Both the position numbers and the translations under genes were made by a program. Positions 2,516-29,380 of a DNA stretch of 64,000 nucleotides are shown here, piece by piece. The stretch covers positions 62,001-126,000 of the IMG/VR virus record IMGVR_UViG_3300043570_001980; one strand, 5' to 3'. Numbering within the stretch: position 1 is the stretch's first letter; every line of letters starts with the position of its first letter. Under the pieces are notes generated by a model, which worked only from the letters and a program-made list of their open reading frames with translations, ran no database searches and was not told the DNA's origin.

Positions 2516-2845
2516 ATGTTACCATATTTGCGAGAAGACATTGGTAACTTGTACAAAAAAATTATAGTAGTTGGATTATACAATTCTGCATCTTTTTCAA
2601 AAAAAGAAAGAGACTATATTTTTTCTTATGTAAGTAAAAAGAATAATTGCGATCAATGTTATATTGACCATTTACCCTTTGAATTTAACATCAACACATT
2701 TGATAGTAATATAATTAACCTAGTTGATAAATTGATTAGCGATTCGGCATATTATGACAATACCGTAGATCCACAATTGTTACTACAGATAAAATGTATT
2801 ATTGCATTTACTCATTTTGCAAATGCAATGAACAACTTAAGATAA
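2516..2845 (+). CDS. Hypothetical protein with CxxCxxxH (CMD/AhpD-like motif)
   Basis: CDQCYIDH. Very AT-rich ORF. Confidence 0.35.
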   Translation: MLPYLREDIGNLYKKIIVVGLYNSASFSKKERDYIFSYVSKKNNCDQCYIDHLPFEFNINTFDSNIINLVDKLISDSAYYDNTVDPQLLLQIKCIIAFTHFANAMNNLR

Positions 2846-2857
2846 TAGGAAATAAAA

Positions 2858-10043: not shown

Positions 10044-12335
10044 ATGCAAAATAATCCCGAAATTGAACAAATCATTGATGCGGCAGTTAGAATTGCCCGA
10101 GATAAAAAACACGAATATGTGTTAACTGAGCATCTATTGTTGTCGTTACTACAATACAATCCATTCAGAAATGTATTAATTAAGTTTGGTTCTGAAGTAG
10201 ACATGCTGGAAGCAGAATTAACTGCATATTTAGAAAATATGATCAATCTACGCAGTGACAAAGAAGATGTTCAACCTCGAAAAACAAATGCACTAGAACG
10301 TATTTTTAATCGTGCGTTGACACAGGTGTTGTTCACTGGTCGCCGAGTAATCACCACAATTGATCTTTATCTTGCAATCATGAGTGAGAGCAATAGTCAT
10401 GCACACTACTTCTTGCTCAAGTACGGTGTAACAAAAGCAGAGTTTGTGAAATTCTGGGAACAAAATTACAAGCACGGCGATGTTAAAATCACCAATCAAC
10501 AGGCCACAGAAATACTTGAAGAACATTGTACCAACATTACTGACCAGGCCAAAAAAGATCAACTTGAACCAGTGATTGGGCGGGAAAAAGACATTGAAGA
10601 AATGGTCACTGTGTTAGCACGTAGATTTAAAGCCAATGTGCTAATGGTAGGAGATCCCGGAGTGGGCAAAACTGCCATCATTGAAGGATTGGCACAGCGT
10701 ATTGTCAACAACACCGTTCCTAGTTTCCTTAGGGACCATGAAGTGTGGAGTTTGGAAATTGGCAGTTTACTAGCAGGTTCAAAATATCGCGGGGAGTTTG
10801 AAGAAAAACTCAAGCAGGTAATTGATGCTTTAGAAAGCAAAAAGAATTGTGTTTTGTTCATTGATGAAGCTCATACCATGCGTGGTGCAGGCAGTTCAGG
10901 ACAGAGTCAACTGGACTTTGCCAACATGATCAAGCCAGCCATTACCAAAGGTGTACTTAAAGTTGTAGCTAGTACTACCTGGGAAGAGTACTACGAAAGT
11001 TTTGAAAAGGATCGTGCATTAATGCGTAGATTCTATAGACTCAGCATTGACGAGCCAAACAAAGAAACCACAGAAAAAATTCTTATTGGACTGAGTCCGC
11101 GGCTGGAAAAGTTTCACAATGTGATGATTGATACAGATGCTATTATGTCAGCAGTTGAACTAAGTGGTCGTTATATTCATGACAAAAAGAATCCTGACAA
11201 AAGCATTGATTTAATTGATGCTGCCTGTGCCCGTGAAAGAGTCAAAGATGCAGGTACGTTAACAGTTACAAAAGAATTAATTATGCAACAGGTCAGTCGT
11301 GTTGCTGGCGTACCAATGGATCATTTGGCCAATCAACAGAGTACACGTATTATTGATCTTGAAAGTAATATCAAACAACGAGTATATGGTCAAGACCAAG
11401 TAATTGACACAGTACTAGATCGTATCTATGTAAGTTTTGCTGGCATCAATACAACAAGAAAACCCATGTCTAGTTTCTTATTCTTGGGCCCAACTGGCAC
11501 AGGTAAAACTGAATTAGCACGTATGTTAGCCGAATACCTTGATATGAAATTACTCAAGTACGACATGAGTGAGTACCAAGAAAAGCATACTGTATCAAGT
11601 TTGATTGGTGCTCCACCGGGCTATGTTGGGTTCGAAGATGGCAATCTTGGTGGCGGCAAATTAATCAGCGATCTGAGCAAGCACCCATTTTCAATATTAT
11701 TGTTTGACGAAGTAGAAAAAGCACATCCTGATGTAAGCAACATCTTTTTACAATTGCTTGATGAAGGAAAAATTACAGGTAGCAACGGAAAAACAGTTGA
11801 TTGTAAAAATACCATTGTTATCATGACCAGCAATCTTGGCAGCGCCGACAGTGAACGTAATAATATTGGCTTCGGAGACATGGCAAAAACCGGCGAAGAT
11901 GATCGTGCTCTTAAAGAATTTTTTAAACCTGAATTACGCAATCGCTTGGATGCAGTCTGTAAGTTTAGCAAGCTTGATAAGCTAGCAATTAAGAAAATTG
12001 TTATTAAATTCGTTGATGAACTAAAAACCAGTCTAGTTGATAAAAATATTAAACTAAACTTGACAGAGCCAGCAGTTGAACTGTTAGCTGACCGTGGATA
12101 TGATCCGTTGATGGGAGCTCGCCCACTGGGTAGAAAAATTGATGAGCTTATTCGTGTTCCGTTAAGTAGAAAAATTTTATTTGACCGTCTAACTGATTGC
12201 AACATAAATGTTGTTGTAAAGGATGGAGAAATTTACTTTGAAACAGACATAACCGTGCCTGTGCAAGAAACAAATCAACCTACAGTTAACAGTGATGGAT
12301 ACATTGTCCTTGACCAATTCAAACCCAGAATTTGA
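10044..12335 (+). CDS. clpA: ATP-dependent Clp protease ATP-binding subunit ClpA
   Basis: Clp N-domain; two AAA+ modules (GDPGVGKT/FIDEAH and GPTGTGKT/LFDEVEK); GARPL. No ClpB middle domain. Confidence 0.92.
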   Translation: MQNNPEIEQIIDAAVRIARDKKHEYVLTEHLLLSLLQYNPFRNVLIKFGSEVDMLEAELTAYLENMINLRSDKEDVQPRKTNALERIFNRALTQVLFTGRRVITTIDLYLAIMSESNSHAHYFLLKYGVTKAEFVKFWEQNYKHGDVKITNQQATEILEEHCTNITDQAKKDQLEPVIGREKDIEEMVTVLARRFKANVLMVGDPGVGKTAIIEGLAQRIVNNTVPSFLRDHEVWSLEIGSLLAGSKYRGEFEEKLKQVIDALESKKNCVLFIDEAHTMRGAGSSGQSQLDFANMIKPAITKGVLKVVASTTWEEYYESFEKDRALMRRFYRLSIDEPNKETTEKILIGLSPRLEKFHNVMIDTDAIMSAVELSGRYIHDKKNPDKSIDLIDAACARERVKDAGTLTVTKELIMQQVSRVAGVPMDHLANQQSTRIIDLESNIKQRVYGQDQVIDTVLDRIYVSFAGINTTRKPMSSFLFLGPTGTGKTELARMLAEYLDMKLLKYDMSEYQEKHTVSSLIGAPPGYVGFEDGNLGGGKLISDLSKHPFSILLFDEVEKAHPDVSNIFLQLLDEGKITGSNGKTVDCKNTIVIMTSNLGSADSERNNIGFGDMAKTGEDDRALKEFFKPELRNRLDAVCKFSKLDKLAIKKIVIKFVDELKTSLVDKNIKLNLTEPAVELLADRGYDPLMGARPLGRKIDELIRVPLSRKILFDRLTDCNINVVVKDGEIYFETDITVPVQETNQPTVNSDGYIVLDQFKPRI

Positions 12336-16183: not shown

Positions 16184-18772
16184 ATGAACATTCATGAACT
16201 AGATTCCTATCGTTTAAGCAACGCAATCAAGTTTAACGACAAGTTAAACCCACGCATTTGGGGAGAGGACGAACATCTTCTCCCTGATGTTCGTGACCAC
16301 TTATTGGCAATTGCGGATGACTTTCGCGAATTCCTTGGCCTAACAGACCTTGAACTAAAAGATGTTACAATATCTGGTTCAAACGCCGCCTACACATATA
16401 CACCACACAGCGACATTGATCTACACTTGGTAGTAGATTTACCCAGGGCCGATGCCAGCGACGTTTATCGTGAGCTGTTTGATGCTAAAAAATATCAGTA
16501 CAACGATCAACACAATTTTAAAATTGGCGGTTACGATGTTGAGTTGTATGTACAGAATGCCAATCAACCGCCGGTGAGCCAAGGCGAGTATTCGGTGTTG
16601 AACAATGACTGGCTACAAGTTCCCAAACGTCAACAAGCTGTGGTTGATGACATGAGCACACGTAGCAAGTACGAAGATCTAGGACACAGAATTGAGTCAG
16701 CCATTGCTGATGGTGATAGACAGCGCATGGAGTCGCTGGCTAAAAAGATACGTGAAATGCGCACAACCGGCCTGGCAAAGACTGGAGAATTTGGTCCAGA
16801 AAATCTAGCATTTAAACTGTTGAGAGCCAGTGGCTTGATTGATCGACTGCGTGAAGCCAGACTTGCCGCAAAAGATCATGAACTAAGTTTACAAGAGCGC
16901 AAGAAAAAGAAAGTACGCTACGGATATGGTGGGTACTGGATGCCAGGATTCTCGTTTGGCGACGGCGAGGGCGGCGATGGTGGTGGTGGCGAAAGTGTAC
17001 AAGAAAACACAGAATCCCCAGACATCAATCAAGACATTAGGCAAGTACTACAACCATTCATTGATAGTTGTGTTGAGTATCTTGGAATTGAACAAGCCCC
17101 AAAAATTATATTAAAACGTGACCCAGAATGGACACGTAGAAACGGCACATTTGGTCAATTTGATCCCGAAACACGTTCAGTCACACTGGCAGTGAGTGGC
17201 CGTCATGTGCTAGATATTTTGCGTACTCTAGCACATGAGCTCACACACTCTCGTCAAAACGAACTAGCTGACATGCCCGTGGATGCAGGCGAAACAGGAT
17301 CCCCTTACGAAGACGAAGCCAATGCCAAAGCAGGCCAAATTATGCGACACTGGGTTGATCAGTATCCTGAATTCTTCAAAGATGCGCCACTAGAGGAATC
17401 TTTAAAAGATAAATTGGCTGCCGCTGCCGCTGCCGCTTGCATAGCTGGCACGCCCGGGTGTGCTACCACACAAAGCATGTCCACCGCTGATACATTGAAA
17501 GGTATTCAAACTGTTGGCCGAACTGCACAAACAGTAAAGCAAATGGGTAGCGCAGGCGCAAAAGAAGAATTAATACAACAACTAAAGAATGAACTGCGTA
17601 GACAACGTGGGCAGTTGCCAGAAACAGTCACTGACGAAGATTATGATCCCAACGGAAAACCACCCGGTCCAGAATTCAAACCCACCATGCCAGCAGGCAC
17701 AGTCAAAGTAGATGTCAGCGATGTCTACGATTGGTACAAGCTAGGACAACACATTAGTGATTTAAAAGGGCTGGGTCAGCATGACTTTGGAAGTGGTCCT
17801 CCTAGTACTATTATGGCATTTGGCAGCGAAGAAGAAGAACACAAGTATATCGACGCATTAAAGAAAACAGGATTGACCACAACTGACATTGATCCTGTTG
17901 ACCCCAATCGACCCAAAGGCATGCCTCGCCAGAAGACAGATCCTACATACAATGTCAACGAAGCATTTGATCAACCTTATCCACTACTTCGATGGGAAAA
18001 GGGTGACTTTGGTGATGTAGACGCAATCGCACGATTAGATGACGGAACTTTTCTAAGTATCATGTTCAACAAGGGATTTAGTAAAGATTCAAAAGAGGAA
18101 GCATGGAGTGTTGAGTTTTATAGAAACAACAGCCAAGAAGTCACAGGTGAAGGTGATTCTCAACGAGTATTTGCCACTGTGTTAAGTGCTATACAAACAT
18201 TTATTAAAAAGTACAAGCCTAATAGAATGACCTTTTCGGCCTCAAAAGAAGTTGAACCGGGACAAAACTCACAAAGCAGAGCCAGACTCTACGATAGTTT
18301 GGTTCAGCGTTATGCCAGAGCTTGGGGTTATAGAGCTTTCCGTGCAGATACCGGCAACAAAGTCATCTACGAACTAAGCAGAAGACAACCTGTAGTAGCA
18401 GAAGGTCCATTTGTTCAAAGAATTGTTCATCCTAATAAAATCAACATCTACGTGCGAGCAGGCAAAAAACCCAAACTGGTTGCAACCAATGTGTCTTATA
18501 ATCTATTAGACAAATACATTGACAAAGTGGTAGACAAATATCCACAGTTTAGGCCCACTGATTTTTCTTTTCAATCTGCTGATGAAAAAGTAATAGCAGA
18601 AGCCACCGGATACATTCCTGTCAACGACAAAGAAGCTCGTGATCCACGCTACAGCATGGCCATCACACAAGACATCAAGCCTGGCGAAGTGCAACGTCAA
18701 GCCAAAAAAATGGGCTGGCGCACCACTGCCGCTGGAACACCACCTACATTAAAGACATCAGGAAGAATGTAA
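16184..18772 (+). CDS. Putative head-packaged polyprotein: pol-beta-like nucleotidyltransferase + HEXXH metallopeptidase-like + further modules
   Basis: ISGSNAAY...SDIDLH; TLAHELTH; junctions VQE-N, LEE-S, VNE-A, VAE-G, IAE-A. Confidence 0.7.
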   Translation: MNIHELDSYRLSNAIKFNDKLNPRIWGEDEHLLPDVRDHLLAIADDFREFLGLTDLELKDVTISGSNAAYTYTPHSDIDLHLVVDLPRADASDVYRELFDAKKYQYNDQHNFKIGGYDVELYVQNANQPPVSQGEYSVLNNDWLQVPKRQQAVVDDMSTRSKYEDLGHRIESAIADGDRQRMESLAKKIREMRTTGLAKTGEFGPENLAFKLLRASGLIDRLREARLAAKDHELSLQERKKKKVRYGYGGYWMPGFSFGDGEGGDGGGGESVQENTESPDINQDIRQVLQPFIDSCVEYLGIEQAPKIILKRDPEWTRRNGTFGQFDPETRSVTLAVSGRHVLDILRTLAHELTHSRQNELADMPVDAGETGSPYEDEANAKAGQIMRHWVDQYPEFFKDAPLEESLKDKLAAAAAAACIAGTPGCATTQSMSTADTLKGIQTVGRTAQTVKQMGSAGAKEELIQQLKNELRRQRGQLPETVTDEDYDPNGKPPGPEFKPTMPAGTVKVDVSDVYDWYKLGQHISDLKGLGQHDFGSGPPSTIMAFGSEEEEHKYIDALKKTGLTTTDIDPVDPNRPKGMPRQKTDPTYNVNEAFDQPYPLLRWEKGDFGDVDAIARLDDGTFLSIMFNKGFSKDSKEEAWSVEFYRNNSQEVTGEGDSQRVFATVLSAIQTFIKKYKPNRMTFSASKEVEPGQNSQSRARLYDSLVQRYARAWGYRAFRADTGNKVIYELSRRQPVVAEGPFVQRIVHPNKINIYVRAGKKPKLVATNVSYNLLDKYIDKVVDKYPQFRPTDFSFQSADEKVIAEATGYIPVNDKEARDPRYSMAITQDIKPGEVQRQAKKMGWRTTAAGTPPTLKTSGRM

Positions 18773-20220
18773 TGAGAGCAACAGAGTTTATAGTTGAAAA
18801 CGCAGATCAAGCCGCAGTCAGTGCTTTGCAAAAAAAGCATGGCTGGTCTACGGGCACAACAGTCAATGGAGATCTTTACTTTACTTGGCAAGGGCTTACT
18901 TATGTGTTTTATGGTGAGCGTATGCGTATCAACGTCCCAAACACTGACCGCTCTATATCAGTTGTGTGGGGCAAGAAACCTGATTGGCAAGGCCGAGGCA
19001 ATGATGAAATTAGTTTTGCACAAGCAGTACAACGAAAAATTCTAAAATTTGACTTGTCAATTTGGCAACAATTGGACCGTGGTCAAATCAATGATAATCA
19101 AGCCCTGCAAAAATTCAAGGCCGAAAATGAACGGCAGGCTAGAGAAGCTCTTGCACAGGATACTACGGAAGGTCGAGAAAAGTTTAACCAGGCTGTGATG
19201 AAACCCGGTTTTGAGTTCAGTCAAGAAATCAACGGTGTCACGTATGAAGTAACAAATGATGAGGGCCCGGGTCCTGTGGTCACTGTAACTGACAAGAACA
19301 AAGAAGTAATTGCTCAAGCGGCATTCTGGAAGCACAAAACTCGTCCAGGATTAGAAAGCCTAAACACTTACGTTGAGCCCGAGTGGCAAGGTCAAGGCAT
19401 TGCCGCAAACATGTATGCTGTGATGCGCATGTTGGGTGCTAACATATCACCGTCTACCATTCAAACAGATGACGGCCAGGCCATGTGGGCCAAGTGGAGT
19501 AAACAAGGTGATGCTAAACATCTAAAGAATCTAAATCCCAAAATCAAAGAGCAAACAGTAACAGAAGGCAAGTTGAGTGTGGATGTACCCAACGAAGAAT
19601 GGTTGCAGGACAAGATTGACTATGCCAAGAGCAAAGGGCGTAACAGCTACGGTGTTCCTTACATGGGCAGTACCACTGCTGGGGTTGTTGGAACTCCACC
19701 TAGAGTGCGTGTAATGCGACTAGCTTCGTTGCCTGGTATGCGCAACGAACAAATGAATGTGCGCAAAAATGATCTAAAGTGGTTAATGGATTACATGGAA
19801 CGCACAGGTAAGTTGCCGCCCATGGGCAGTAATCCCAACGAGGAATACCTGCCCTACATCATGGTGGCCTACAATGGTGAAGCCTGGGTCAACGAAGGCA
19901 ATCATCGTATCATGGCTGCCTACAGATTAAACTGGCCCGACATGCCCATTGAAATACGTTACTTTGATGGTGGTGAAAGAATTGAATCAGGGCCAATGGC
20001 TCCGGGAAAGATTGGGCTGGGTACACCAGTGGCAGAATCTCATGAACAATGTCCTGAGTGTGGCGGAGCAATGTTCAGTGAATTAATGATCAACGAAAAA
20101 CAAGATGCCTGTTACTACAAAGTTAAAAGCCGTTACAAAGTATGGCCTAGTGCTTATGCCAGTGGTGCACTGGTGCAATGTCGTAAAAAAGGTGCGGCCA
20201 ATTGGGGGAACAAAAAATGA
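18772..20220 (+). CDS. Putative head-packaged polyprotein: GNAT acetyltransferase + ParB-like domain + Cys module
   Basis: Starts MRATEFIVE; YVEPEWQGQGIA (GNAT motif A); NEGNHRIMAA (ParB-like); junctions VTE-G and VAE-S. Confidence 0.7.
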   Translation: MRATEFIVENADQAAVSALQKKHGWSTGTTVNGDLYFTWQGLTYVFYGERMRINVPNTDRSISVVWGKKPDWQGRGNDEISFAQAVQRKILKFDLSIWQQLDRGQINDNQALQKFKAENERQAREALAQDTTEGREKFNQAVMKPGFEFSQEINGVTYEVTNDEGPGPVVTVTDKNKEVIAQAAFWKHKTRPGLESLNTYVEPEWQGQGIAANMYAVMRMLGANISPSTIQTDDGQAMWAKWSKQGDAKHLKNLNPKIKEQTVTEGKLSVDVPNEEWLQDKIDYAKSKGRNSYGVPYMGSTTAGVVGTPPRVRVMRLASLPGMRNEQMNVRKNDLKWLMDYMERTGKLPPMGSNPNEEYLPYIMVAYNGEAWVNEGNHRIMAAYRLNWPDMPIEIRYFDGGERIESGPMAPGKIGLGTPVAESHEQCPECGGAMFSELMINEKQDACYYKVKSRYKVWPSAYASGALVQCRKKGAANWGNKK

Positions 20221-21731
20221 GATATCGTGAAATATTAGAAGCCTGCTGGAAAGGCTATCACAAAGAAGGCATGAAAACCATGTTTGGCAAACGCTATCCC
20301 AACTGCGTGAAAAATACCAACGAAGAACTAGAAGAAGATCTACGCAAATGGTTCAAAGAGAAGTGGGTGCGTTTTGGTCCAGATGGCAAGATTCGTGGAG
20401 ATTGTGCCAGGGGTGATGATAGTGAAGGCAAGCCAAAATGTTTGCCACAAAGCAAGGCACACGGTCTAGGTAAAAAGGGTCGTGCAAGTGCGGCAAGTCG
20501 TAAGCGCAGACAAGATCCCAATCCAGAGCGTAGTGGTCCAGCAATCAATGTCAACACCAAGAAAAAATCAAACGAAGGTGCAGTTGGAGTTGGTTGGTCT
20601 CACAAGCCCGAAGCAATTGACAAGATTCATTCTTGGCAAAATTCAGAGACAGGTACAGATTCAAGAATGTTTCAGGGTTACAAAATGAAGTTCACTCCCA
20701 ATGGGATGTTTATCTACAAAGGTGGCGATGTGGTACATAAGCAGCCTGGAGATTTTTCAGACCCGACCAATAAAGACATCATGGCGGCTAAGAGAAGAAT
20801 AACAATGTTGATTAATAAAACGCAAGGCGTGGCGGAAGGCTCTGAGCAACAGTACGCCGTTACCATTGACGCAATCAATCACGGTGTGTTGGCACCTGTA
20901 ACAGTTGTTGCCGGCAGTTCAGAAGAAGCAAAACAAAAGGCCATTGCTGGTGTTAAAGCATCAATGATCAAGCGTGGATATGAATTAATGGTGCGTAGTG
21001 TATCAGCCAAGCCCGAACAAGGTGTGGCGGAAAACATGGACCACAGCAAAGATGGTCGCGCTGTGGAAGAACTCAAGGCAGCATTGATAGATCGCAAACA
21101 ACGATTACAGTCTGCCAGTGATGATCAAGTGTACGATAGCATTGACAAGATCATGACACGTATTGCAAAAACTCACAGCATCAGTGGACAGAAACTGCAT
21201 GACCTGTGGGTGGACCGGTACAAACAAGTACCTGATACATGGATCATGAACGAAGATGCCAGTGGTATAGATTTTGACATGCAGTTTGACGATGACACCG
21301 GGTCGTTTGCAACAGTGACCGCTCGAGCACAAGGCCGCACACTAGGTTCGGTCAAGTTCTTTATGGACGGAGATACCTTGGAAGCAGACATGGTAGAAGT
21401 GGATGACCGGTATCGTGGACAAGGCATTGCGGCGGCCATGTATGACTATGCCAAGAGCCAAGGTTATACAATAGAAAAAAGTTCGAATCTAACACCCGAT
21501 GGTGATCACTTCTGGAACAAAAATCGCGGAGAAGAAACTGTTTGGGAACAAGGCATGGCAGAGAACTTTGCCGACGGTAAGAATCCTGGACGCAAAGGCC
21601 TAGCCAAACGTGTGGGTGTGAACTGCAAACAACCTGTTGCCAAACTGCGTAGTATTGCTGCCAATTCATCAGGCGAACGACAACGAATGGCACATTGGTG
21701 TGCCAACATGAAATCAGGAAAGAAAAAATGA
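20217..21731 (+). CDS. Putative head-packaged polyprotein with a GNAT domain and small Cys/basic modules
   Basis: Starts MRYREILE; CWKGY...PNCVK; DLRKWFKEKWV; VEVDDRYRGQGIA; two QGVAE and one QGMAE. Confidence 0.7.
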   Translation: MRYREILEACWKGYHKEGMKTMFGKRYPNCVKNTNEELEEDLRKWFKEKWVRFGPDGKIRGDCARGDDSEGKPKCLPQSKAHGLGKKGRASAASRKRRQDPNPERSGPAINVNTKKKSNEGAVGVGWSHKPEAIDKIHSWQNSETGTDSRMFQGYKMKFTPNGMFIYKGGDVVHKQPGDFSDPTNKDIMAAKRRITMLINKTQGVAEGSEQQYAVTIDAINHGVLAPVTVVAGSSEEAKQKAIAGVKASMIKRGYELMVRSVSAKPEQGVAENMDHSKDGRAVEELKAALIDRKQRLQSASDDQVYDSIDKIMTRIAKTHSISGQKLHDLWVDRYKQVPDTWIMNEDASGIDFDMQFDDDTGSFATVTARAQGRTLGSVKFFMDGDTLEADMVEVDDRYRGQGIAAAMYDYAKSQGYTIEKSSNLTPDGDHFWNKNRGEETVWEQGMAENFADGKNPGRKGLAKRVGVNCKQPVAKLRSIAANSSGERQRMAHWCANMKSGKKK

Positions 21732-22132
21732 GAAATTTTATTAATCTACTGGAAGCTATAGAAAAAGGCTGCCCGCTTGCTACACAAAGCATTGAACTAA
21801 ATTTAAAAAATCGTCAAAAAGCCATAGACGAATACCATTATGGACCTCTCAATCCCAACGAGCCCAACGATGAATATTGGGAAGAATTAGCAGACAAATG
21901 GAACACAAATGACATTAAATCAGTAAAACAAAACCGCTGTGGGAATTGTGCAGCCTTTGACATTTCTGAATCCATGCAAGATTGTATTGCAAAAGGCATT
22001 GGTGAGGAACCAGGGTCAGATCCACACGATACAATAGATGCTGGGCAACTAGGATATTGTAAGTTTTTGAAATTTAAATGTGCCGCCAAACGAACTTGCG
22101 ATGCCTGGGTAGAAGGCGGCCCTGTTACATGA
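21728..22132 (+). CDS. Cys-rich hypothetical protein with an IP-like propeptide
   Basis: MRNFINLLE-A; CGNCAAF, YCKFLKFKC, TCDAW. Confidence 0.6.
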   Translation: MRNFINLLEAIEKGCPLATQSIELNLKNRQKAIDEYHYGPLNPNEPNDEYWEELADKWNTNDIKSVKQNRCGNCAAFDISESMQDCIAKGIGEEPGSDPHDTIDAGQLGYCKFLKFKCAAKRTCDAWVEGGPVT

Positions 22133-22275
22133 AATTTGGTCGTAAAAAATAATGTCAGCATCTTCAAAATCTATTTTATTAGTAGGATGCTTGTTTAGCG
22201 ATTATTGCGGATTTGGAGAGATCATTGGAAATCATAAGTAATCAATAAAGATTGCCTTTGCAAATAGGAAAAAAA

Positions 22276-23769
22276 ATGAGATTTAACGAACTTCAAGAAA
22301 CTACCCTAGGCGGATTTAAAGTAAAACCGTTGCATATTGAGAACACCGGTGTTAGTGAAGAGCTTGAGCATAACTTTGACAAACACATAGTTGCGGTCAC
22401 TGTCAGTGATCCTCACAGTTCAGCTGTGACACAACGTCAAGAACTAAAACAACGCAAGGCCAAGGTACGTGCATTAGATCGTGAATCTGCTGTTAATACT
22501 GCTGTCAATTGGTATCGTAAACAAGGCTACAAAGTACACGATCATCACTACATTGGCACAGATAACGGTATTGCCGAAGGCTCTGTAACTAAAAAGCCGC
22601 AACCCTATAATGACCCCAATTGGTCCAAAAACTTACCTAAAGAAAAATTAGATGCATTGGCTGGACCAAGATATAAAAAAGATAAAAAAGACAAAGGTGT
22701 AGCCGAAGCAATCAAGTTAAATGCGCCACAACGCACAATACCACGTGATGAATTGCAGGGCTATGCTGACCGTATCAAGACTGGCACCAAAACCAAACGT
22801 GACAAGTTTAGCCCTATCATTCACGGCAGCAATATCAAGGCCATTACCAAAGATGATGAGAACACTGAGTGGGACTTGGATGATTTGTCCAAGCAGATTA
22901 CCACACGTCCCCGGGCCATACTTGGCACTAATGCCAAAATGGAAAAGTCTAAAACTGAAGGCGAAATCATTTATGACCTGACATTGCCTGCACTATCAGG
23001 TATTGTTGTGGATGAAGATACTGGCGACTTTGTGGAAATTACCACATGCCCGGGTGCTGGTGCTTGCCAACTATTCTGTTATGCTAGAAAAGGTGGCTAT
23101 GTTATGTTCCCTGCTAGCAGTATGAGTGCGGCGCAGGCACTAAACTTCCTGGTCAATGACCCTGAAGGTTATACTGCCAGAGTCAATCAAGAAATCAAAA
23201 CAATCAAAGCCAAAACAGACAAAGCTGGTGTACAGTTAGTTGTTCGTTGGCACGATGCTGGTGATTTCTTCTCCAAGGAGTATTTGGATCTAGCATATGG
23301 TGTTGCCCAATCCAATCCTGATGTGCAGTTTTATGCCTACACCAAGATGGGCGATGTTGCCACAGGTGCCGCACCTGCTAACTTTACCATGAACTTTTCA
23401 TCAGGCAGCAAGCGTGGTGAAGAAAAGAAAGTGGAATTCTACAAACAACAAAACCCTGGTGCCACAGTCAAGCAAGGTGTTACTGTTCCCAAGGACATGT
23501 TCTTTGATCTAATTGCACGTAAAGGCACTAGCTTGATCAAAGACGCCAAGGGTCGCACACAATTTGCCAGCCCCGAAGCACTTGACACATTTAAGCAACG
23601 TATTGCACAACAGTACAAGGTTGCTCCTGATTCAATTATTACCTACGATCAAATGCTAGCAACTCCAGTGGGCACAGAGCCCAAGTGGAATGTTATTGTA
23701 CAACCGGGTGCTGGTGACCGTGCAGCCAATCGCAAGGATGTAATTGACAGTTACTTGATGTTCCACTGA
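22276..23769 (+). CDS. Putative head-packaged polyprotein with a C-terminal Gp88-like domain
   Basis: MRFNELQE-T; GIAE-G and GVAE-A junctions; TCPGAGAC..FCYA, VRWHDAGDF, FYAYTK. Confidence 0.6.
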   Translation: MRFNELQETTLGGFKVKPLHIENTGVSEELEHNFDKHIVAVTVSDPHSSAVTQRQELKQRKAKVRALDRESAVNTAVNWYRKQGYKVHDHHYIGTDNGIAEGSVTKKPQPYNDPNWSKNLPKEKLDALAGPRYKKDKKDKGVAEAIKLNAPQRTIPRDELQGYADRIKTGTKTKRDKFSPIIHGSNIKAITKDDENTEWDLDDLSKQITTRPRAILGTNAKMEKSKTEGEIIYDLTLPALSGIVVDEDTGDFVEITTCPGAGACQLFCYARKGGYVMFPASSMSAAQALNFLVNDPEGYTARVNQEIKTIKAKTDKAGVQLVVRWHDAGDFFSKEYLDLAYGVAQSNPDVQFYAYTKMGDVATGAAPANFTMNFSSGSKRGEEKKVEFYKQQNPGATVKQGVTVPKDMFFDLIARKGTSLIKDAKGRTQFASPEALDTFKQRIAQQYKVAPDSIITYDQMLATPVGTEPKWNVIVQPGAGDRAANRKDVIDSYLMFH

Positions 23770-23770
23770 T

Positions 23771-23971
23771 ATGCGCTACAACGAAATCAAGCCTGTTAAA
23801 ACCAAGATGAAAACCTATGTTGTAAAGATAAAATTACAGCAAACAGGCTACACCAATATCATCGACACCACAGTGATGGCTCGCACACCAGAAATGGCTC
23901 GTAGACTACTCCGACAACAATACAACAACAAGCATGTGGTTGTTGGACAGCCAAAAGAACTCAAAGTTTAG
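23771..23971 (+). CDS. Small basic hypothetical protein
   Basis: MRYNEI start; coupled to the upstream gene. Confidence 0.55.
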   Translation: MRYNEIKPVKTKMKTYVVKIKLQQTGYTNIIDTTVMARTPEMARRLLRQQYNNKHVVVGQPKELKV

Positions 23972-23998
23972 TTCAGTTAACGCCCAACTAAATACTGG

Positions 23999-24298
23999 GT
24001 GAAAAAACAATTTGTAAAAGCTTTTTTTGATTTACATTGCGACTGGCAAGGATTACCACCTTCCTATCGAATCTACGTCAACGATGAATTATTTGCTGAA
24101 CGTACATTCTATTGGGAAAATGAATACCTAAAAGAAATACTGCAAATAGAAGCACCGGCAGGAATGTACACAGTTAAGTTTGAGCCGCTAAAGCCCAACT
24201 TGGCCACGTTCCAGATGGAAAATTATGGAATTGAACACGGATCGGCTCGCTGGGTTGATCAACAAACCTTGGAGATTATATTCGATGCGACTACGTGA
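23999..24298 (+). CDS. Hypothetical protein
   Basis: GTG start 5 nt after CTAAATA (23988). Confidence 0.5.
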   Translation: MKKQFVKAFFDLHCDWQGLPPSYRIYVNDELFAERTFYWENEYLKEILQIEAPAGMYTVKFEPLKPNLATFQMENYGIEHGSARWVDQQTLEIIFDATT

Positions 24299-24452
24299 AA
24301 TAACTGAAAGTATGGGCGGCACATGCTCAGGCGGTATTGCTACTGTGGCTCAACCAATGGGCGAAGTGATAACTAGGACTAAGAGTACTAAACCGGCTAA
24401 ATATGCTAATAGCGCACAAAAAATGGTGCCTGTAAAACCTAGGAAAAAATAA
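24285..24452 (+). CDS. Small basic protein with an IP-like propeptide
   Basis: MRLREITE-S start at ATG 24285. Confidence 0.55.
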   Translation: MRLREITESMGGTCSGGIATVAQPMGEVITRTKSTKPAKYANSAQKMVPVKPRKK

Positions 24453-24892
24453 TGTTATCGGACGATTTAAAGACCTTGCTGGCCACACAATATGCTTTGA
24501 GTATCAAAGCACAGAATTTTCACTGGAATGTGGAAGGTCCTGACTTTGCTCAATACCACGACTTCTTTGCCAACTTCTATGAAGAGGTTTACAGCGCAGT
24601 TGATCGAATCGCTGAATACATTCGCACCTTGCAAGAATACAGCCCGGGAAGTTTTGAGCGTTTTCAAGAACTGTCTATTATACAAGGACAAACAAAGATC
24701 CCACGTGCTCGATTGATGATTGAAGAATTGCTGTCAGACAACGGCGCCCTAATTGATCTGTTGAATCAGACATTTGTCAGTGCTGAACAAGAAAACAACC
24801 AGGGCATTGCCAACTTCATTGCTGAACGCTTGGACGCACAGGCCAAGCATGGCTGGATGCTGAGAAGTTTCTTAAAAGGCGACCGGGCATGA
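24452..24892 (+). CDS. dps: Dps / DNA-binding ferritin-like protein
   Basis: KAQNFHWNVEGPDF..HDFF...Y...D.IAEYIR, and C-terminal KHGWML. Confidence 0.92.
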   Translation: MLSDDLKTLLATQYALSIKAQNFHWNVEGPDFAQYHDFFANFYEEVYSAVDRIAEYIRTLQEYSPGSFERFQELSIIQGQTKIPRARLMIEELLSDNGALIDLLNQTFVSAEQENNQGIANFIAERLDAQAKHGWMLRSFLKGDRA

Positions 24893-25482
24893 GCGATTTA
24901 AAAGATATTTTAGCAAAGCTAGATAAAATTGCCGAGGGAGACATTACTCCCGTGAATGTTAAATCTGGACTTAATAAACAACAAAGGCGAGTACCTGAAC
25001 TTCCTGCGCTGTTCAAGCCAAGAAGTATCAATGTATTAACCAATAAAACCGATCCTGAGCATCCTACCAAGGGATACTTTGTTGGCTCAGAAAGTGTTGA
25101 ACAAGACGAAGATCAAGAAACCATCGCCGAAGTGGTCACATCCGAAGATGTAGTCAGCACAGTGAAGAAAAAACTAGGCGATTACCTAGCTGACCTTTCA
25201 AAAGAAATCAAGTCAGACTCTGATCTCAAGGACAAGATTCCACAAGAAGTTGATCAAATTGGTTCTTCAGTTAGAACTATTACCACAGACGACGGTCAAG
25301 AAATTAAAATCCACGGCAACGAGGATGATGGTTTCAGAATTACAATTAAAAACAAACCACATAGTGCAAAGTTTGAATCACTCAAACATGCCGAGATGGC
25401 CTGCGAAATGTACTGCTCACGTCGTAGAGCACGTACTATGGAAACTTCACAGGCCACACCTGATTACCTGGATGAAGCATAA
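24889..25482 (+). CDS. Hypothetical acidic protein, putative head-packaged
   Basis: KIAE-G, TIAE-V, ends YLDEA. Confidence 0.55.
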   Translation: MSDLKDILAKLDKIAEGDITPVNVKSGLNKQQRRVPELPALFKPRSINVLTNKTDPEHPTKGYFVGSESVEQDEDQETIAEVVTSEDVVSTVKKKLGDYLADLSKEIKSDSDLKDKIPQEVDQIGSSVRTITTDDGQEIKIHGNEDDGFRITIKNKPHSAKFESLKHAEMACEMYCSRRRARTMETSQATPDYLDEA

Positions 25483-27164
25483 TGAATCTCAATAACTTAT
25501 TCGAAGCTGCCAACCCGGCGCAACAAGCTGCCATTGCTATAGCAAAGAAAAAAGCTGGTGAAAAACCCAAGAACAAAGGCCTGACTGAATTTGCTCCACC
25601 CGGTGGGAACAACGGTGATTCGGGACGCTGGTACACAGATGACGAGCTGGCAGACATCATTGGTGATGATTGGTTTGAAGATTTTGATGTCAGCAACGAT
25701 GGATTTAACATTGATGCATACGGCGAAAAGGCCAAGAAGAATTTAGTGGGCTATGCCAACTCATGGTTTGATGACAAAGGTTACAATGTTAACGTAATGG
25801 GTGTAGAACATAATGATGTTGACCATGATTTAAAATGGTACATTGTTGGTAGTTTCCAGAATGATAATTTTGCAGGTAAAGATGTAGACGAAGGCTTGGG
25901 TTCCAAGTTAGCTGGATTAGGTCTTGCTGGAGCAATGGCTCTTGGCTCAGCAGGCGCCAATGCCAGAGTTACTCCTGATGGCCAAGGCGGTTTCACTGGC
26001 GGGCTAAAGCCAAGTACAACAGTGACAGCACCTGCTGATAATAAACCGGCCGCAGAAGCACCAAAAGGATTTAGCAAAGAATATCTACAAAAGGCAGCAG
26101 ACCCAAATAGATTTGGTAGATACATGATCAGTGTTGAAAAAGCACAAGAATTGCTGAAGAACATGCAAGAAGCTGTAGCGGAAGGTTCACAGCGAGTTGA
26201 TTCACTTGTGACCGACGCACTAAAAATAATGCAGGGTTCAGACGTAAATGATGCTGTACGAGCTCTAAAGACTGTGCTTGGAGATAGAGAATACAACGGC
26301 CGCCGTGGTCATTACAATTTCTATGTTCGACAACTGATGGATATGTATGGCCAGCAAGGTGTAACAGAAGCTGGTTACAGAAACTACGATGACAATCGCA
26401 CAGGTTTTGGTAAGAATTCACAAGCATATCGTGCTGATGGTGGTGCCAACGATGAAGATCACGAAAGCGATCGTCGCCGTGAACAACAAGTGCAGTCCGG
26501 TACATGGTACATTCGTCTCAATGGAAAAATCATCAAAGACAAACAAGGCAATCCTTATTCATTCCGCGGTAAGGCTGCCGCAAACAAAGCCGCACTAACA
26601 ATGCAGGCTAAACTGTTCAATCAGGGCAAAGAGTTTATGTTGACTACCAATCCCAACGATAACCCTCAAGGTGTGGCGGAAGGCTGGAAAGATGTTGTTG
26701 CAGGTAGTGCAATGGCATTAAGTTCACTAGGTGTTGGCGCTCAAACAATGCCAAGCATGAATGGTCAACAAGTAGAATTAGCAAACAAATATTTTCAGGT
26801 CTTAGTGCAACGAGCAAAAGAAGATGGTAGAGAATTAGACACAAGAACATTGAATGTGTTGAAGGCAAAGGCACAAGATGCGGCTGCACAAAAGATGCAA
26901 CAATCTAAGAAATCACAAACTAATTTTCCAAGTCAAGGCAGTGAGCGTAGAGTTTCTAAAGATATAGGTACTTTTGAATCGCAAGGCGTGGCAGAAGGCC
27001 CTGCTGTAGACGCATACATGGCAGGCAAGAGTCCGGCACTGGCTCACTTTGCTGATCAACTAGATAAGAGTACTGAAGTAAATTTTCAGAAAAACAAAGG
27101 TGTAGCGGAAGGTCAACGAAGCGGCTACGGTCGCGGCTACGCTAGTTATAAATCCAGCAAGTAA
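25482..27164 (+). CDS. Putative head-packaged polyprotein with multiple GVAE junctions and internal signal-peptide-like segments
   Basis: MNLNNLFE-A; GLTE-F, VDE-G, AVAE-G, QGVTE-A, two QGVAE-G, KGVAE-G. Confidence 0.7.
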   Translation: MNLNNLFEAANPAQQAAIAIAKKKAGEKPKNKGLTEFAPPGGNNGDSGRWYTDDELADIIGDDWFEDFDVSNDGFNIDAYGEKAKKNLVGYANSWFDDKGYNVNVMGVEHNDVDHDLKWYIVGSFQNDNFAGKDVDEGLGSKLAGLGLAGAMALGSAGANARVTPDGQGGFTGGLKPSTTVTAPADNKPAAEAPKGFSKEYLQKAADPNRFGRYMISVEKAQELLKNMQEAVAEGSQRVDSLVTDALKIMQGSDVNDAVRALKTVLGDREYNGRRGHYNFYVRQLMDMYGQQGVTEAGYRNYDDNRTGFGKNSQAYRADGGANDEDHESDRRREQQVQSGTWYIRLNGKIIKDKQGNPYSFRGKAAANKAALTMQAKLFNQGKEFMLTTNPNDNPQGVAEGWKDVVAGSAMALSSLGVGAQTMPSMNGQQVELANKYFQVLVQRAKEDGRELDTRTLNVLKAKAQDAAAQKMQQSKKSQTNFPSQGSERRVSKDIGTFESQGVAEGPAVDAYMAGKSPALAHFADQLDKSTEVNFQKNKGVAEGQRSGYGRGYASYKSSK

Positions 27165-27274: not shown

Positions 27275-27360
27275 ACACCTTAGGACCGGTACTTGTTACC
27301 GTGGTGTAGGCGGCTGCTGCCTTGGACGGCCTGATTCGCTACCAGGAATCCAAAAGTGAG
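27275..27360 (+). ncRNA. Candidate structured RNA (multi-hairpin with possible pseudoknot)
   Basis: GC-rich island in an AT-rich intergenic region: ACACC/GGTGT, CGGTA/TACCG, AGGC/GCCT, TGGA/TCCA, CCTG/CAGG. Confidence 0.5.
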
Positions 27361-27372
27361 CATAATTACTAT

Positions 27373-28443
27373 ATGTCAAAATACAAACTAAATTGGATAC
27401 AAAAACCACTAGTACAATTTCCAGCAAAAAATTTTCAAAATCTTGTTTGTCTTAGTCCTTTTGTGGGCATGTGCATTGATACAGATGGTGGAATAACATT
27501 ATGTGGTTGTCAAGATTGGATGCCCTCCAAGGTTGGAAATTTATTAATCAATTCACTAGACGAAATATTGTCCAATGCTGGCAGTACCAATATACGTCAA
27601 AGCATCATCAACGGAACCTACGACTTTTGCAATGAAAACACCTGTGGAGTTTTAAAAAGTGATCTACTTAATGTTAAAGAAAATGTAGGCGATGATATTA
27701 AGCCCTTGCTTCTTGATGCATCTCGTTACATTATGCCCAAAGAGATTTGGGTATCCGGCGATCGCACCTGTAATCTCAGTTGCCCAAGTTGTCGAACGGA
27801 AATTATAAAAAACAATGATGCACAGACCGAACATCTAGAACACCTAGGGCAAACGCTAAAATCAAATCTGTTTTGTACACCCACTGATCGACCAATTGTA
27901 CTACACGTGAGTACCAGTGGGGAACTGTTTGCTAGTCCAATGTTGTTGTCGTTTGTTAACACAATATCAACTGAGGATTTTCCAAACGTACAATTGGCTA
28001 TACAATCAAATGGTTTACTGGTACCAGAACGATGGCATCGACTCGAGAGCATGCAAGAAAAAGTAAAATCAATTACCATTACCACTGATGCCGCAAGGCC
28101 CGCTACATATGAAAAATTGCGTCGTGGTGGACGCTGGGACGACCTACAACATGCATTATTGTGGATCTCTGAAAAGAAAAAACAAAATGGCATGCTGTTT
28201 AAAATTCGAATGATTGTTCAAAAAGATAATTTTGAAGAAATGCTAGAATTTTACAACATGGGACAGGAACTGGGCGTAGATTTAGTCGAATATGGAAGAA
28301 TTGGAAATTGGGGTACATTTTCCAACGATGAATTTAAGTTGATTGATGTATTTAATCCCAAACACAGTCAATATCCACAAGCACAAGAAAACTTAGATCA
28401 AATAAAAAATCTTGACCGAGTAATTTTATTTGGCGGATTATAA
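27373..28443 (+). CDS. Radical SAM protein with an N-terminal SPASM/twitch-like Cys cluster
   Basis: CNLSCPSC (CxxxCxxC) and CLSPF...LCGC. Start moved to ATG 27373. Confidence 0.8.
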   Translation: MSKYKLNWIQKPLVQFPAKNFQNLVCLSPFVGMCIDTDGGITLCGCQDWMPSKVGNLLINSLDEILSNAGSTNIRQSIINGTYDFCNENTCGVLKSDLLNVKENVGDDIKPLLLDASRYIMPKEIWVSGDRTCNLSCPSCRTEIIKNNDAQTEHLEHLGQTLKSNLFCTPTDRPIVLHVSTSGELFASPMLLSFVNTISTEDFPNVQLAIQSNGLLVPERWHRLESMQEKVKSITITTDAARPATYEKLRRGGRWDDLQHALLWISEKKKQNGMLFKIRMIVQKDNFEEMLEFYNMGQELGVDLVEYGRIGNWGTFSNDEFKLIDVFNPKHSQYPQAQENLDQIKNLDRVILFGGL

Positions 28444-28786: not shown

Positions 28787-29380
28787 ATGGCATTAGTACC
28801 AATGGTGCTGGAACAAACCAGCAAAGGTGAGCGTAGCTATGATATCTATAGCCGCTTGTTACGTGACCGTGTGATTTTACTTGAAGGTGAAGTACATGAT
28901 CAAATGGCAAATCTAATTGTTGCTCAACTACTATTTCTCGAGAGCGAAAACCCAGACAAAGATATCAGTATGTACATCAACAGCCCTGGAGGTAGTGTCA
29001 CTGCTGGTATGGCTATCTATGATACCATGCAGTTTATTAAACCCGATGTTAATACCATTGTAATGGGACAAGCATGTAGCATGGGAAGTTTGTTGGCACA
29101 ATCGGGTGCCAAAGGCAAGCGCATGATCCTGCCTAATGCACGACACATGATACACCAACCTAGTGGTGGCGCTCGTGGCATGCAAAGCGATATCGAAATT
29201 AGCTACAAAGAAATTACCTATTTGAAGAAACGTTTAACTGAAATTTATGTCAAGCACAACTCAACGGGTAAAACTTTTGAACAGCTAACTGAAGATATGG
29301 ATCGTGACAAGTTTATGTCAGCAGAGGAATCAGTTAATTACGGTCTTGCCGACAAAGTGATAACTACACGTGATATTTAA
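28787..29380 (+). CDS. clpP: ATP-dependent Clp protease proteolytic subunit
   Basis: [23 protein letters not shown] (catalytic Ser), MIHQP, DRD. Confidence 0.95.

Follow-up and report, generated by a model that had tools for sequence, protein, structure and literature searches.

The locus lies in a 64,000-nt window (the whole stretch of DNA that was analysed, positions 62,001 to 126,000 of IMG/VR record IMGVR_UViG_3300043570_001980) of a T4-superfamily jumbo phage from lake water. It contains three + strand polyprotein genes in which small modules are separated by [Q/K]-G-V-A-E/G joints (the slash marks the predicted protease cut), and two upstream genes with looser joints. The genes were delimited by ORF analysis and translation, and domains were sought with Pfam and PHROGs. 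The features are as follows.

16184..18772 (+), polyprotein gene A (862 aa): large module A1, with weak nucleotidyltransferase and DUF6934 matches, followed by small modules A2 and A3, which are found separately in 7 and 31 other loci
18389..18406 (+), loose joint PVVAE/G between A1 and A2
18587..18604 (+), loose joint KVIAE/A between A2 and A3
18772..20220 (+), polyprotein gene B (482 aa) with modules B1, B2 and B3; it starts with the CTS-like leader MRATEFIVE/N (18772-18798) and its stop overlaps the ATG of gene C; B3 is found in 98 other loci and in a cyanophage virion protein
19552..19569 (+), loose joint QTVTE/G between B1 and B2
20023..20040 (+), loose joint TPVAE/S between B2 and B3; many homology blocks end at 20018 and restart at 20025-20050
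20217..21731 (+), polyprotein gene C (504 aa from the ATG at 20217) with modules C1-C4; leader MRYREILE/A (20217-20240); C3 carries a GNAT acetyltransferase domain
20823..20840 (+), joint between C1 and C2, CAAGGCGTGGCGGAAGGC (QGVAE/G), 1 mismatch to the consensus
21018..21035 (+), joint between C2 and C3, CAAGGTGTGGCGGAAAAC (QGVAE/N), exact 15-mer
21549..21566 (+), decayed joint between C3 and C4, CAAGGCATGGCAGAGAAC (QGMAE/N)
22276..23769 (+), polyprotein gene D (497 aa from the ATG at 22276) with modules D1-D3; leader MRFNELQE/T (22276-22299); D3 carries a GP88 domain (PF17338)
22564..22581 (+), decayed joint between D1 and D2, AACGGTATTGCCGAAGGC (NGIAE/G), left repeat of the D2 indel
22693..22710 (+), decayed joint between D2 and D3, AAAGGTGTAGCCGAAGCA (KGVAE/A), right repeat of the D2 indel
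25482..27164 (+), polyprotein gene E (560 aa) with modules E1-E7; leader MNLNNLFE/A (25482-25505); no family or fold match for the cargo
25575..25592 (+), loose joint KGLTE/F between E1 and E2
26169..26186 (+), decayed joint between E2 and E3, GAAGCTGTAGCGGAAGGT (EAVAE/G)
26355..26372 (+), decayed joint between E3 and E4, CAAGGTGTAACAGAAGCT (QGVTE/A)
26667..26684 (+), joint between E4 and E5, CAAGGTGTGGCGGAAGGC (QGVAE/G), the exact 18-nt consensus
26982..26999 (+), joint between E5 and E6, CAAGGCGTGGCAGAAGGC (QGVAE/G), 2 mismatches
27096..27113 (+), joint between E6 and E7, AAAGGTGTAGCGGAAGGT (KGVAE/G)

It was noticed in the sequence-only reading that the GVAE junctions are conserved at the DNA level and that five copies use GCG, apparently an uncommon codon, for Ala; this observation was confirmed. 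The 15-mer CAAGGTGTGGCGGAA is exact at 21018 and 26667, whereas the copy at 20823 differs by 1 nt, and by 1 of 18 when the next Gly codon is included. The copies at 26982 and 27096 have 2 mismatches, and those at 22693, 26169 (placed one codon earlier, at 26166, in the sequence-only reading) and 26355 have 3. The window holds 10 matches at up to 3 mismatches against 1.48 expected, and 0 of 100 shuffles reached 10. The copy at 21549 (CAAGGCATGGCAGAG, QGMAE) has 4 mismatches, and one more is found at 22564 (NGIAE). All are in frame on the + strand in ORFs 20202-21731, 22252-23769 and 25482-27164. GCG accounts for 176 of 2714 Ala codons (6.5%) in the 128.8-kb contig, but for 5 of the 9 joint Ala codons, corresponding to a binomial P of about 1e-4. 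Within the window alone the evidence is modest: given the peptide and the codon usage, the exact 15-mer pair is only mildly surprising, about 1% per pair. The decisive support comes from relatives.

To test whether codon choice in the joints matches the background, 97 distinct [QKE]GVAE joints were collected from loci fetched by protein homology, not by the motif. In these joints Ala is GCG 81 times (8.1 expected), Val is GTG 79 times (23.4 expected), the first Gly is GGT 95 times, Glu is GAA 87 times, and Gln is CAA 64 of 64 times. After collapsing to 52 joints with no flank homology, the counts for GCG, GTG and GGT are still 41, 38 and 51 of 52. Elsewhere, Ala before Glu is GCG in 5.1% of cases. 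Codon identity in the joint is about 0.8-0.9 whatever the synonymous divergence of the adjoining module (0.2-0.87), against 0.40 expected from codon usage. These results effectively refute the possibility that the codon pattern is chance, given a conserved peptide.

The exact 18-mer CAAGGTGTGGCGGAAGGC occurs in more than 120 IMG/VR stretches, in loci of 34-52% GC, and 152 of 153 copies are in frame. In 596 Gb of prokaryote genomes it is rare and unrelated. In-frame near-matches at 0-5 mismatches number 31, 25, 44, 40, 43 and 82, against 0, 0, 0, 0.5, 3.5 and 13 out of frame, and variant codons are mostly single transitions from the consensus (GTA, GCA, GAG). Only about 12% of the recognisable joints are perfect, so any selection on the DNA itself is weak, and the mismatch spectrum fits copying followed by decay better than strong selection on every base.

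These data also bear on the possibility that the nucleotide conservation serves an RNA- or DNA-level function unrelated to recombination, such as ribosome pausing at module boundaries (rare codons or a Shine-Dalgarno-like stretch), a two-layer G-quadruplex (GG-TGT-GG-C-GG-AA-GG) or a binding site for a regulator. The two rarest codons, GTG and GCG, are exactly those that create the GG runs across codon borders, and the motif binds the anti-SD tail better than 96% of genomic 18-mers. However, 69.5% of the synonymous recodings of QGVAEG bind the anti-SD tail as well or better, so the codons are not tuned for that. The predicted G-quadruplex is marginal at -1.4 kcal/mol, and no common local fold exists among the window copies. 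Neither idea explains the near-fixed T of GGT, the C of the second Gly codon, or CAA. The flanks carry no conserved sequence, and the broad decay spectrum argues against strong selection on each base. A function of this type appears unlikely.

It was proposed in the sequence-only reading that the repeat doubles as an in-frame recombination point, letting cargo cassettes be inserted, deleted or swapped while keeping frame and cleavage site. This interpretation is supported. Modules occur in other orders and combinations in relatives (E4-E6-E3, E4-E3, D1-D3, tandem E3-E3 and others). There are 208 module families in 123 proteins; one family has 23 different right and 10 different left neighbours, and 236 of 285 neighbour pairs are distinct. 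In addition, 1072 database proteins share single modules with gene E. The ends of blastn blocks pile up within 6 nt of joints, 28 against 5 expected. The 129-nt module D2 is present here and absent in a relative that is about 91% identical in DNA, and it is flanked by two joint copies, with the crossover inside GGT...GAA, although the relative's single joint (GTG GCG) is not a simple chimera of this phage's two decayed joints. Contigs from three lake runs show an E4-joint-E4 tandem. The joint between C1 and C2 holds, at a synonymous site, the only SNP (20828 C/T) that separates a near-identical strain over 17.5 kb. On the other hand, no recombination event was seen directly in the assembled contigs to which the comparison was confined, and seven near-identical contigs show no rearrangement, so events are rare on the observed time scale. 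Two module boundaries compared with a close relative coincide with cleavage-like sites that share little DNA, so selection for intact cleavable units can set boundaries without the repeat. Taking these points into account, microhomology is the likely mechanism rather than a demonstrated one.

That the module mosaics are assembly chimeras formed at the repeat is very improbable. The 18-nt repeat is probably shorter than the k-mers commonly used by assemblers, and the same arrangements recur in independent samples: that of this phage in seven contigs, the arrangement of L028, L029 and L183 in two samples, and joints in three runs.

A dedicated sequence-specific enzyme, either a site-specific recombinase (integron- or shufflon-like) or a homing nuclease, could in principle recognise the 18-mer and move the modules. 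The core is fixed, fairly long and direction-specific, and it bounds mobile cassettes, which is the anatomy of attC or sfx-type sites; the tandem duplications and reorderings would also fit. However, the 95%-complete 342-kb genome of the same phage has no Pfam match to tyrosine integrases, serine resolvases, HNH or GIY-YIG nucleases, and none was found among the neighbouring ORFs. The joints have no dyad symmetry or extended flanks, near-identical strains sampled repeatedly show no rearrangement, and many joints are heavily decayed yet still bound modules. This explanation is unlikely. In contrast, a RecA/UvsX gene is present, although 18 bp is short for RecA-type exchange.

Several lines of evidence suggest that the joint is a protease site. 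The 342-kb genome encodes a Peptidase_S77 protein that matches T4 gp21 structure 5JBL with the His and Ser motifs kept, and alignment of the major capsid protein to mature T4 gp23 places a V-I-L-E/N site next to the T4 maturation site. The leaders MRATEFIVE, MRYREILE, MRFNELQE and MNLNNLFE compare with T4 MKTYQEFIAE, and such leaders are enriched in array ORFs, 37 of 85 against 193 of 1176 (P = 2e-8). The same module follows a leader in one phage and an internal joint in another, beginning at the same residue after Glu. Decayed joints keep Glu at P1 and V/M/I at P3 while other positions drift. Five of six joints of gene E lie in linkers with pLDDT below 50 between confident domains. Homologous small modules sit in an annotated virion protein of cyanophage S-SCSM1, separated by GVSE/G and QVSE/G.

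It is nevertheless possible, though unlikely, that the joint is only a flexible linker or a site for some other protease, and that the proteins are ordinary multidomain cytoplasmic proteins not loaded into capsids; the DNA conservation would still be copied by descent, but would have nothing to do with a cleavage site. In the absence of proteomics for this phage, cleavage at QGVAE/G and capsid location have no direct support, and a co-fold of the protease with the peptide gave no answer. One joint (AVAE, residue 231-234 of gene E) is predicted inside a helix. The genes lie among replication and chaperone genes, not in the head module, but T4's own internal-protein genes also lie outside the head gene cluster.

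The arrangement can be compared with several known systems. The T4 internal proteins (IPI, IPII, IPIII, Alt), processed by prohead protease gp21, also carry a short N-terminal leader, the capsid targeting sequence, ending in hydrophobic-x-Glu (MKTYQEFIAE/A), and the cargo is likewise small and highly variable (PMC3012670, PMC9026906). In T4 the leader DNA is also identical between different cargo genes: ipII and ipIII share 47 identical nt across the ribosome-binding site and leader, then diverge right after the cleavage codon. In T4, however, each cargo is a separate gene with one leader, whereas here up to 8 cargo modules are fused in one reading frame and separated by an internal joint that has its own fixed 18-nt spelling. 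The leaders in this phage group are not conserved as one DNA sequence, and the cargo has no detectable homology to the T4 IPs.

The PeSL mobile regulatory cassettes of T4-type phages (Arbiol et al. 2010, PMC2839356; Comeau et al. 2014, PMC4122927) are short conserved DNA elements flanking variable cargo in hyperplastic regions; recombination between copies deletes or inserts the cargo, and mini-circles were shown for them. PeSLs are intergenic promoter-plus-terminator units that move whole genes, whereas the joint described here is 18 nt of coding sequence inside a reading frame, moves protein domains, and has no promoter or stem-loop. In-frame conserved motifs serving as recombination points are known, for example the T-even tail-fibre adhesin motifs (Tetart, Desplats and Krisch 1998, cited in PMC2839356), where a conserved peptide motif, with its conserved DNA, marks the border of exchangeable protein segments so that swaps stay in frame. 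Those systems swap one terminal or hypervariable segment; here the motif is iterated to give multi-cassette arrays, also appears to be a protease site that separates the products, and its synonymous-site bias is quantified across hundreds of copies.

In the polyvalent proteins of phages and conjugative elements (Iyer et al. 2017, PMC5512222) several unrelated effector-type domains, including GNATs, sit in one polypeptide that is thought to be packaged in the capsid and delivered with the DNA, in some cases with proteolytic release. The modules here are much smaller, there is no in-built peptidase domain, and release is predicted to depend on the prohead protease at a repeated fixed joint; the DNA-level conservation of the joints was not part of that description. 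Integron gene cassettes (attC) and shufflons are also arrays of exchangeable cassettes bounded by a repeated site, but here no integrase or Rci-type recombinase was detected, the site is in-frame coding sequence without imperfect inverted repeats, and the cassettes are protein domains, not genes.

The reading that we favour, with a probability of roughly 0.6, is that the repeats are the coding joints of polyprotein arrays. Each array gene begins with a roughly 9-residue leader resembling the T4 capsid targeting sequence and strings together small, independently folding cargo modules (median 91 aa), separated by a peptide with Glu at P1 and a hydrophobic residue at P3, which fits the specificity of the gp21-type prohead protease this phage encodes. 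It is inferred that the leader loads the precursor into the prohead, the protease cuts it into separate internal proteins, and these are ejected with the DNA. At the DNA level the joint is one sequence, read as CAA, GGT, GTG, GCG, GAA and GGC, shared by hundreds of boundaries between unrelated modules in many related phages; it uses codons that are rare in these genomes and differ between the two Gly positions. Protein-level selection cannot produce this pattern, so in this reading the joint DNA must be copied from boundary to boundary. The simplest agent, itself inferred, is recombination or template switching between joint copies, within a genome or between co-infecting relatives, using the phage's own RecA/UvsX-type machinery. 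After each event the joint decays, mainly by transitions at synonymous sites and later by amino-acid changes that keep V/M/I at P3 and E at P1. Such recombination events would insert, delete, duplicate or reorder modules and automatically keep the reading frame and the cut site.

The 128.8-kb IMG/VR viral record to which the window belongs represents about 35% of a genome. A 342-kb record, which is 95% complete, was 100% identical over 17.5 kb of the region compared and supplied the rest of the genome. The family-B DNA polymerase is closest to those of jumbo phages such as Sinorhizobium phage Phosso, Agrobacterium phage Atu_ph07 and the Rak2-like group, and the phage occurs in at least 24 lake-water metagenome runs. 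The complete record has a T4-type head module with a gp23-family capsid protein, portal and scaffold proteins and a gp21-family prohead protease. In the following, a slash within a peptide marks the predicted cut, or the module boundary, after the preceding residue.

The sequence-only reading had named copies of a GVAE-encoding repeat; all of these exist and are in frame on the + strand in three ORFs. The window holds ten matches to the 15-mer at up to 3 mismatches, against 1.5 expected. GCG makes up 6.5% of Ala codons in the contig but 5 of the 9 joint Ala codons (P about 1e-4). Further features of the region are as follows.

16184-18772 and 18772-20220, two upstream ORFs carrying looser versions of the joint: VVAE/G, VIAE/A, TVTE/G and PVAE/S
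20038-20217, module B3; 20241-20580, start of module C1; 21564-21728, module C4: small basic Cys-containing modules
20217-20220, stop of polyprotein gene B and start of gene C, overlapping as ATGA
21549 and 22564, two further decayed copies of the joint, + strand
24452-24892 and 27322-28443, a ferritin/Dps-like gene between arrays D and E, and a radical SAM protein with a SPASM domain directly downstream of array E
9177-9968, 10044-12335 and 28787-29380, a DnaJ (J domain plus C-terminal domain), a two-ring Clp/Hsp100-type AAA+ ATPase (Clp_N, AAA, AAA_2, ClpB_D2-small) and a ClpP protease, a chaperone and protease set that is unusual cargo for a phage

To test whether the codon choice in the joints departs from background, 113 loci were fetched by homology to two of the polyproteins, using peptide words that do not include the motif. 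These loci hold 97 distinct [QKE]GVAE sites, whose codons were compared with the codon usage of the fetched loci.

Table. Codons at [QKE]GVAE joints in the fetched loci.
Position; codon; observed; background or expected
First Gly; GGT; 95 of 97; background 0.42
Val; GTG; 79 of 97; 23.4 expected
Ala; GCG; 81 of 97; 8.1 expected
Glu; GAA; 87 of 97; background 0.81
Following Gly; GGC; 45 of 57; background 0.30
Preceding Gln; CAA; 64 of 64; background 0.73

When sites with a homologous upstream or downstream flank were collapsed, 52 independent contexts remained with the same bias (GCG 41, GGT 51, GTG 38), whereas Ala followed by Glu elsewhere in the same loci is GCG in 5.1% of cases. Of 153 copies of the 18-mer, 152 are in frame in long open frames, in loci whose GC content ranges from 34 to 52%. 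In 596 Gb of prokaryote genomes it occurs 56 times, mostly in GC-rich actinobacteria where these codons are ordinary; the remaining hits include a few short, probably mis-binned MAG contigs, and these matches are not informative about the host. Because only 3 pairs of joints orthologous on both sides were found, too few for a dS-type test, one-sided flank homology was used instead: codon identity between joints is about 0.8-0.9 whether the adjoining module is nearly identical or synonymously saturated, whereas codon usage alone predicts 0.40. Moreover, the two Gly codons of the motif prefer different codons. Taken together, these observations rule out protein-level or tRNA-level selection as the cause, and imply that the joint DNA is shared by copying.

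Other functions at the RNA or DNA level were also considered. Ribosome pausing through a Shine-Dalgarno-like stretch is not supported, since 69.5% of synonymous recodings would bind the anti-SD tail as well or better. A two-layer G-quadruplex is marginal, and there is no shared local fold. A search for an antisense copy or guide RNA gave no reverse-strand match to the motif in the 342-kb genome.

To see how the modules are arranged in other phages, the five proteins were cut at the joints, which gives 20 segments, and these were mapped on all loci. They occur in other orders and combinations: E4-E6-E3 and E4-E3, against E3-E4-E5-E6 here; D1-D3 without D2; C1...A3...C2...D3 in a single locus (L040), with other sequence between the modules; and tandem E3-E3. 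In the IMG/VR loci L010 and L218, tandem pairs of diverged E3-like 62-aa modules are separated by ...YGKPE/GSK rather than by the standard joint, which is an alternative or heavily decayed junction. Contigs from three lake-water runs (X21, X22 and X23) show an E4-joint-E4 tandem and other joint-to-joint arrangements; in the tandem, position 26684 (the end of the joint between E4 and E5) is joined through GGT to 26379 (the start of E4), meaning that a tandem pair of E4-like modules exists in co-occurring relatives. Across the loci there are 85 complete array ORFs with 2-8 joints each, and the median module size is 91 aa (interquartile range 64-141). A database search with gene E found 1072 proteins that typically share only one module (14-30% coverage at 60-90% identity), and in 120 of them GVAE occurs 220 times against 2.4 expected. 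Clustered at 80% reciprocal coverage, the modules fall into 208 families, one of which has 23 different right and 10 different left neighbors. In contrast, a tblastn search of 50,697 cultured phage records gave no match for gene E, and gene C matched only through its N-terminal small modules, in cyanophages.

The ends of blastn homology blocks coincide with joints, for example 20822-21033, 26170-26370 and 26667-26997; twenty-eight ends fall within 6 nt of a joint, against 5 expected. When the window was compared with L028, a relative that is about 91% identical in flanking genes, the 129-nt module D2 was found to be present here and absent there. D2 is flanked by two joint copies, and the switch of homology lies inside GGT...GAA. 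The same comparison, however, also shows boundaries without a DNA repeat: the GNAT module is inserted between ...WIMNE/ and ...QGMAE/, and in the relative module C3a follows an N-terminal leader, MRAQEFIVSE/N, rather than an internal joint, starting at the same residue. L028 has the same ATGA overlap as genes B and C, but at a different module boundary, which suggests translational coupling of successive arrays. Many blocks also end at 25862, inside module E2 (...GSFQ/NDN) and not at a recognizable joint. E2 is therefore probably two modules, with a boundary of another kind or a joint decayed beyond recognition; the AlphaFold model likewise shows a confident domain at 37-133 followed by about 60 disordered residues. 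It is unlikely that the mosaics are assembly chimeras, because the repeat is probably shorter than the k-mers used by assemblers and the arrangements recur in independent samples.

Several properties suggest that the joint is a protease site and that the proteins are capsid cargo, although none of them is direct evidence of cleavage. T4-type capsid-targeted internal proteins carry an N-terminal leader of about 10 residues ending in hydrophobic-x-Glu, with the gp21 processing determinants at leader residues 8 and 10 (PMC9026906). The leaders found here, MRATEFIVE/N, MRYREILE/A, MRFNELQE/T and MNLNNLFE/A, compare with T4 MKTYQEFIAE/A, and the pattern is enriched in array ORFs (37 of 85 against 193 of 1176), although DNA-level conservation of the leaders as one sequence was not seen in this phage group. 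The gene for a gp21-family (Peptidase S77) prohead protease is absent from the 128.8-kb fragment but present in the 342-kb record of the same phage (PF03420, E = 6e-25), and its product matches the T4 gp21 structure 5JBL at E = 1.8e-12 with the His (GEVDHP) and Ser (GVSSRG) motifs kept. Glu at P1 and Val, Met or Ile at P3 are the positions that survive when joints decay, and T4-type and giant-phage prohead proteases cut after Glu in such motifs (PMC5694885, PMC9026906). The capsid protein of this phage, aligned to mature T4 gp23, has V-I-L-E/N next to the T4 maturation point. In the AlphaFold model of gene E, five of six joints lie in low-confidence linkers between confident domains, whereas a co-fold of the protease with a 27-residue joint peptide gave no answer and counts neither for nor against. 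The 342-kb record also encodes, directly after the large terminase and before a gp32-like gene, an 820-aa protein (G001:C1:270618-273080; 2619-5081 in locus L116) with another perfect GGTGTGGCGGAAGG joint (QGVAEG), an RDIAE/G site and a long Gly/Ala-rich C-terminal part, which is probably another processed head protein.

As for the cargo itself, Pfam and PHROGs scans revealed no homology to T4 IPI, IPII, IPIII or Alt, but only GNAT, GP88, DUF6934 and families of unknown function, and a Foldseek search of the gene E model against the PDB gave nothing at E <= 0.001. The small basic Cys-containing modules are far more widespread than the rest (B3 in 98 fetched loci, C4 in 53) and reach marine cyanomyoviruses. 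There, modules homologous to B3, C1 and C4 are concatenated in an annotated virion protein of cyanophage S-SCSM1 (gene 29), with GVSE/G and QVSE/G between them; they may be DNA-associated internal proteins. Polyvalent proteins combine two to fifteen unrelated domains in one polypeptide of a phage or conjugative element (Iyer et al. 2017). The genes studied here resemble them in having three to seven modules each, with separate confident domains in the model and modules that recur independently elsewhere, but of their characteristic domain repertoire, which often includes an own peptidase (MPTase, ArdC-N, DarA and others), only a GNAT is shared, and no peptidase, ArdC or DarA domain was found.

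In-frame near-matches to the 18-mer form a broad spectrum: counts at 0 to 5 mismatches are 31, 25, 44, 40, 43 and 82, against 0, 0, 0, 0.5, 3.5 and 13 out of frame. The variants are mostly single transitions from the consensus. This looks like repeated birth of consensus copies followed by decay, not like strong purifying selection on each base. Unrelated modules cannot share a joint by descent unless the joint is copied when arrays are rearranged, and recombination or template switching between joint copies does exactly this while preserving both frame and cut site. One detail fits occasional conversion between copies. Over 17.5 kb the only difference between the window and a contig from another sample (IMGVR_UViG_3300042446_001084) is C/T at 20828, the synonymous third base of the Gly codon in the joint between C1 and C2, where the T allele restores the perfect 18-nt consensus. 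The chance that a single SNP falls in any of the ten 18-mers is about 1%, but this is a post hoc argument from a single event. Seven near-identical contigs show no rearrangement, so events are rare on the observed time scale; in the assembled contigs of the lake-water runs, rare within-population chimeras could not be looked for, and the joints detected there come from relatives in the same lakes.

The phage encodes a RecA/UvsX-type recombinase. A dedicated tyrosine or serine recombinase, as in integron or shufflon site-specific cassette systems, was not recognizable (no PF00589 or PF00239 match in the 95%-complete genome), although a divergent enzyme cannot be excluded. Similarly, no HNH or GIY-YIG nuclease of the kind driving homing gene conversion was found (no PF01844 or PF01541 match at E <= 0.01, other nuclease families not being included in the search). 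T4 itself offers a DNA-level precedent: ipII and ipIII (NC_000866, 5660-5739 and 6357-6436, minus strand) share an identical 47-nt stretch covering the ribosome-binding site and the ten leader codons, and diverge immediately after the cleavage codon. PeSL elements mediate comparable gene-level shuffling with circular intermediates (PMC2839356). As with PeSL-type cassettes, copies of the joint coincide with insertion, deletion and replacement boundaries between related phages. However, a PeSL is an intergenic unit made of an early promoter plus a stem-loop terminator, whereas the repeat described here is in frame within ORFs and has neither conserved flanks nor a shared fold.

Thus, the proposal of the sequence-only reading that the repeat doubles as an in-frame recombination point, at which cargo cassettes can be inserted, deleted or swapped while frame and cleavage site are kept, is supported by comparative evidence, whereas the cleavage and the recombination mechanism remain inferred. 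No mention of the motif in a phage context was found in the searchable literature, and the system is best described as a new variation on themes already known, namely T4 capsid-targeted internal proteins, motif-mediated modular shuffling and polyvalent proteins. It is conceivable, although unlikely, that the 18-nt joint is the attachment site of a protein-domain cassette system that works without an integrase. In that case modules flanked by good joint copies would behave as semi-selfish elements, which would excise, duplicate and invade the arrays of co-infecting jumbo phages through the phages' own recombination machinery; the joint spelling would then be kept by this drive rather than by any benefit to one phage, and the result would be a community-wide, combinatorial pool of capsid-delivered effectors in lake phages.

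If the interpretation is correct, the joint offers a clean natural case of synonymous-site conservation caused by recombination history rather than by translation. The 18-mer gives a sequence tag for finding capsid cargo genes in metagenomes, most of which have unknown function and are plausible anti-defence candidates, and it also suggests a design rule for loading several foreign proteins into T4-type capsids from one gene. More than 200 module families and more than 1000 different polyproteins already share the system. It would be a simple and general way for large phages to evolve their injected protein arsenal, in which one short sequence guarantees both a correct cut by the maturation protease and an in-frame crossover point, so that any module can be combined with any other.
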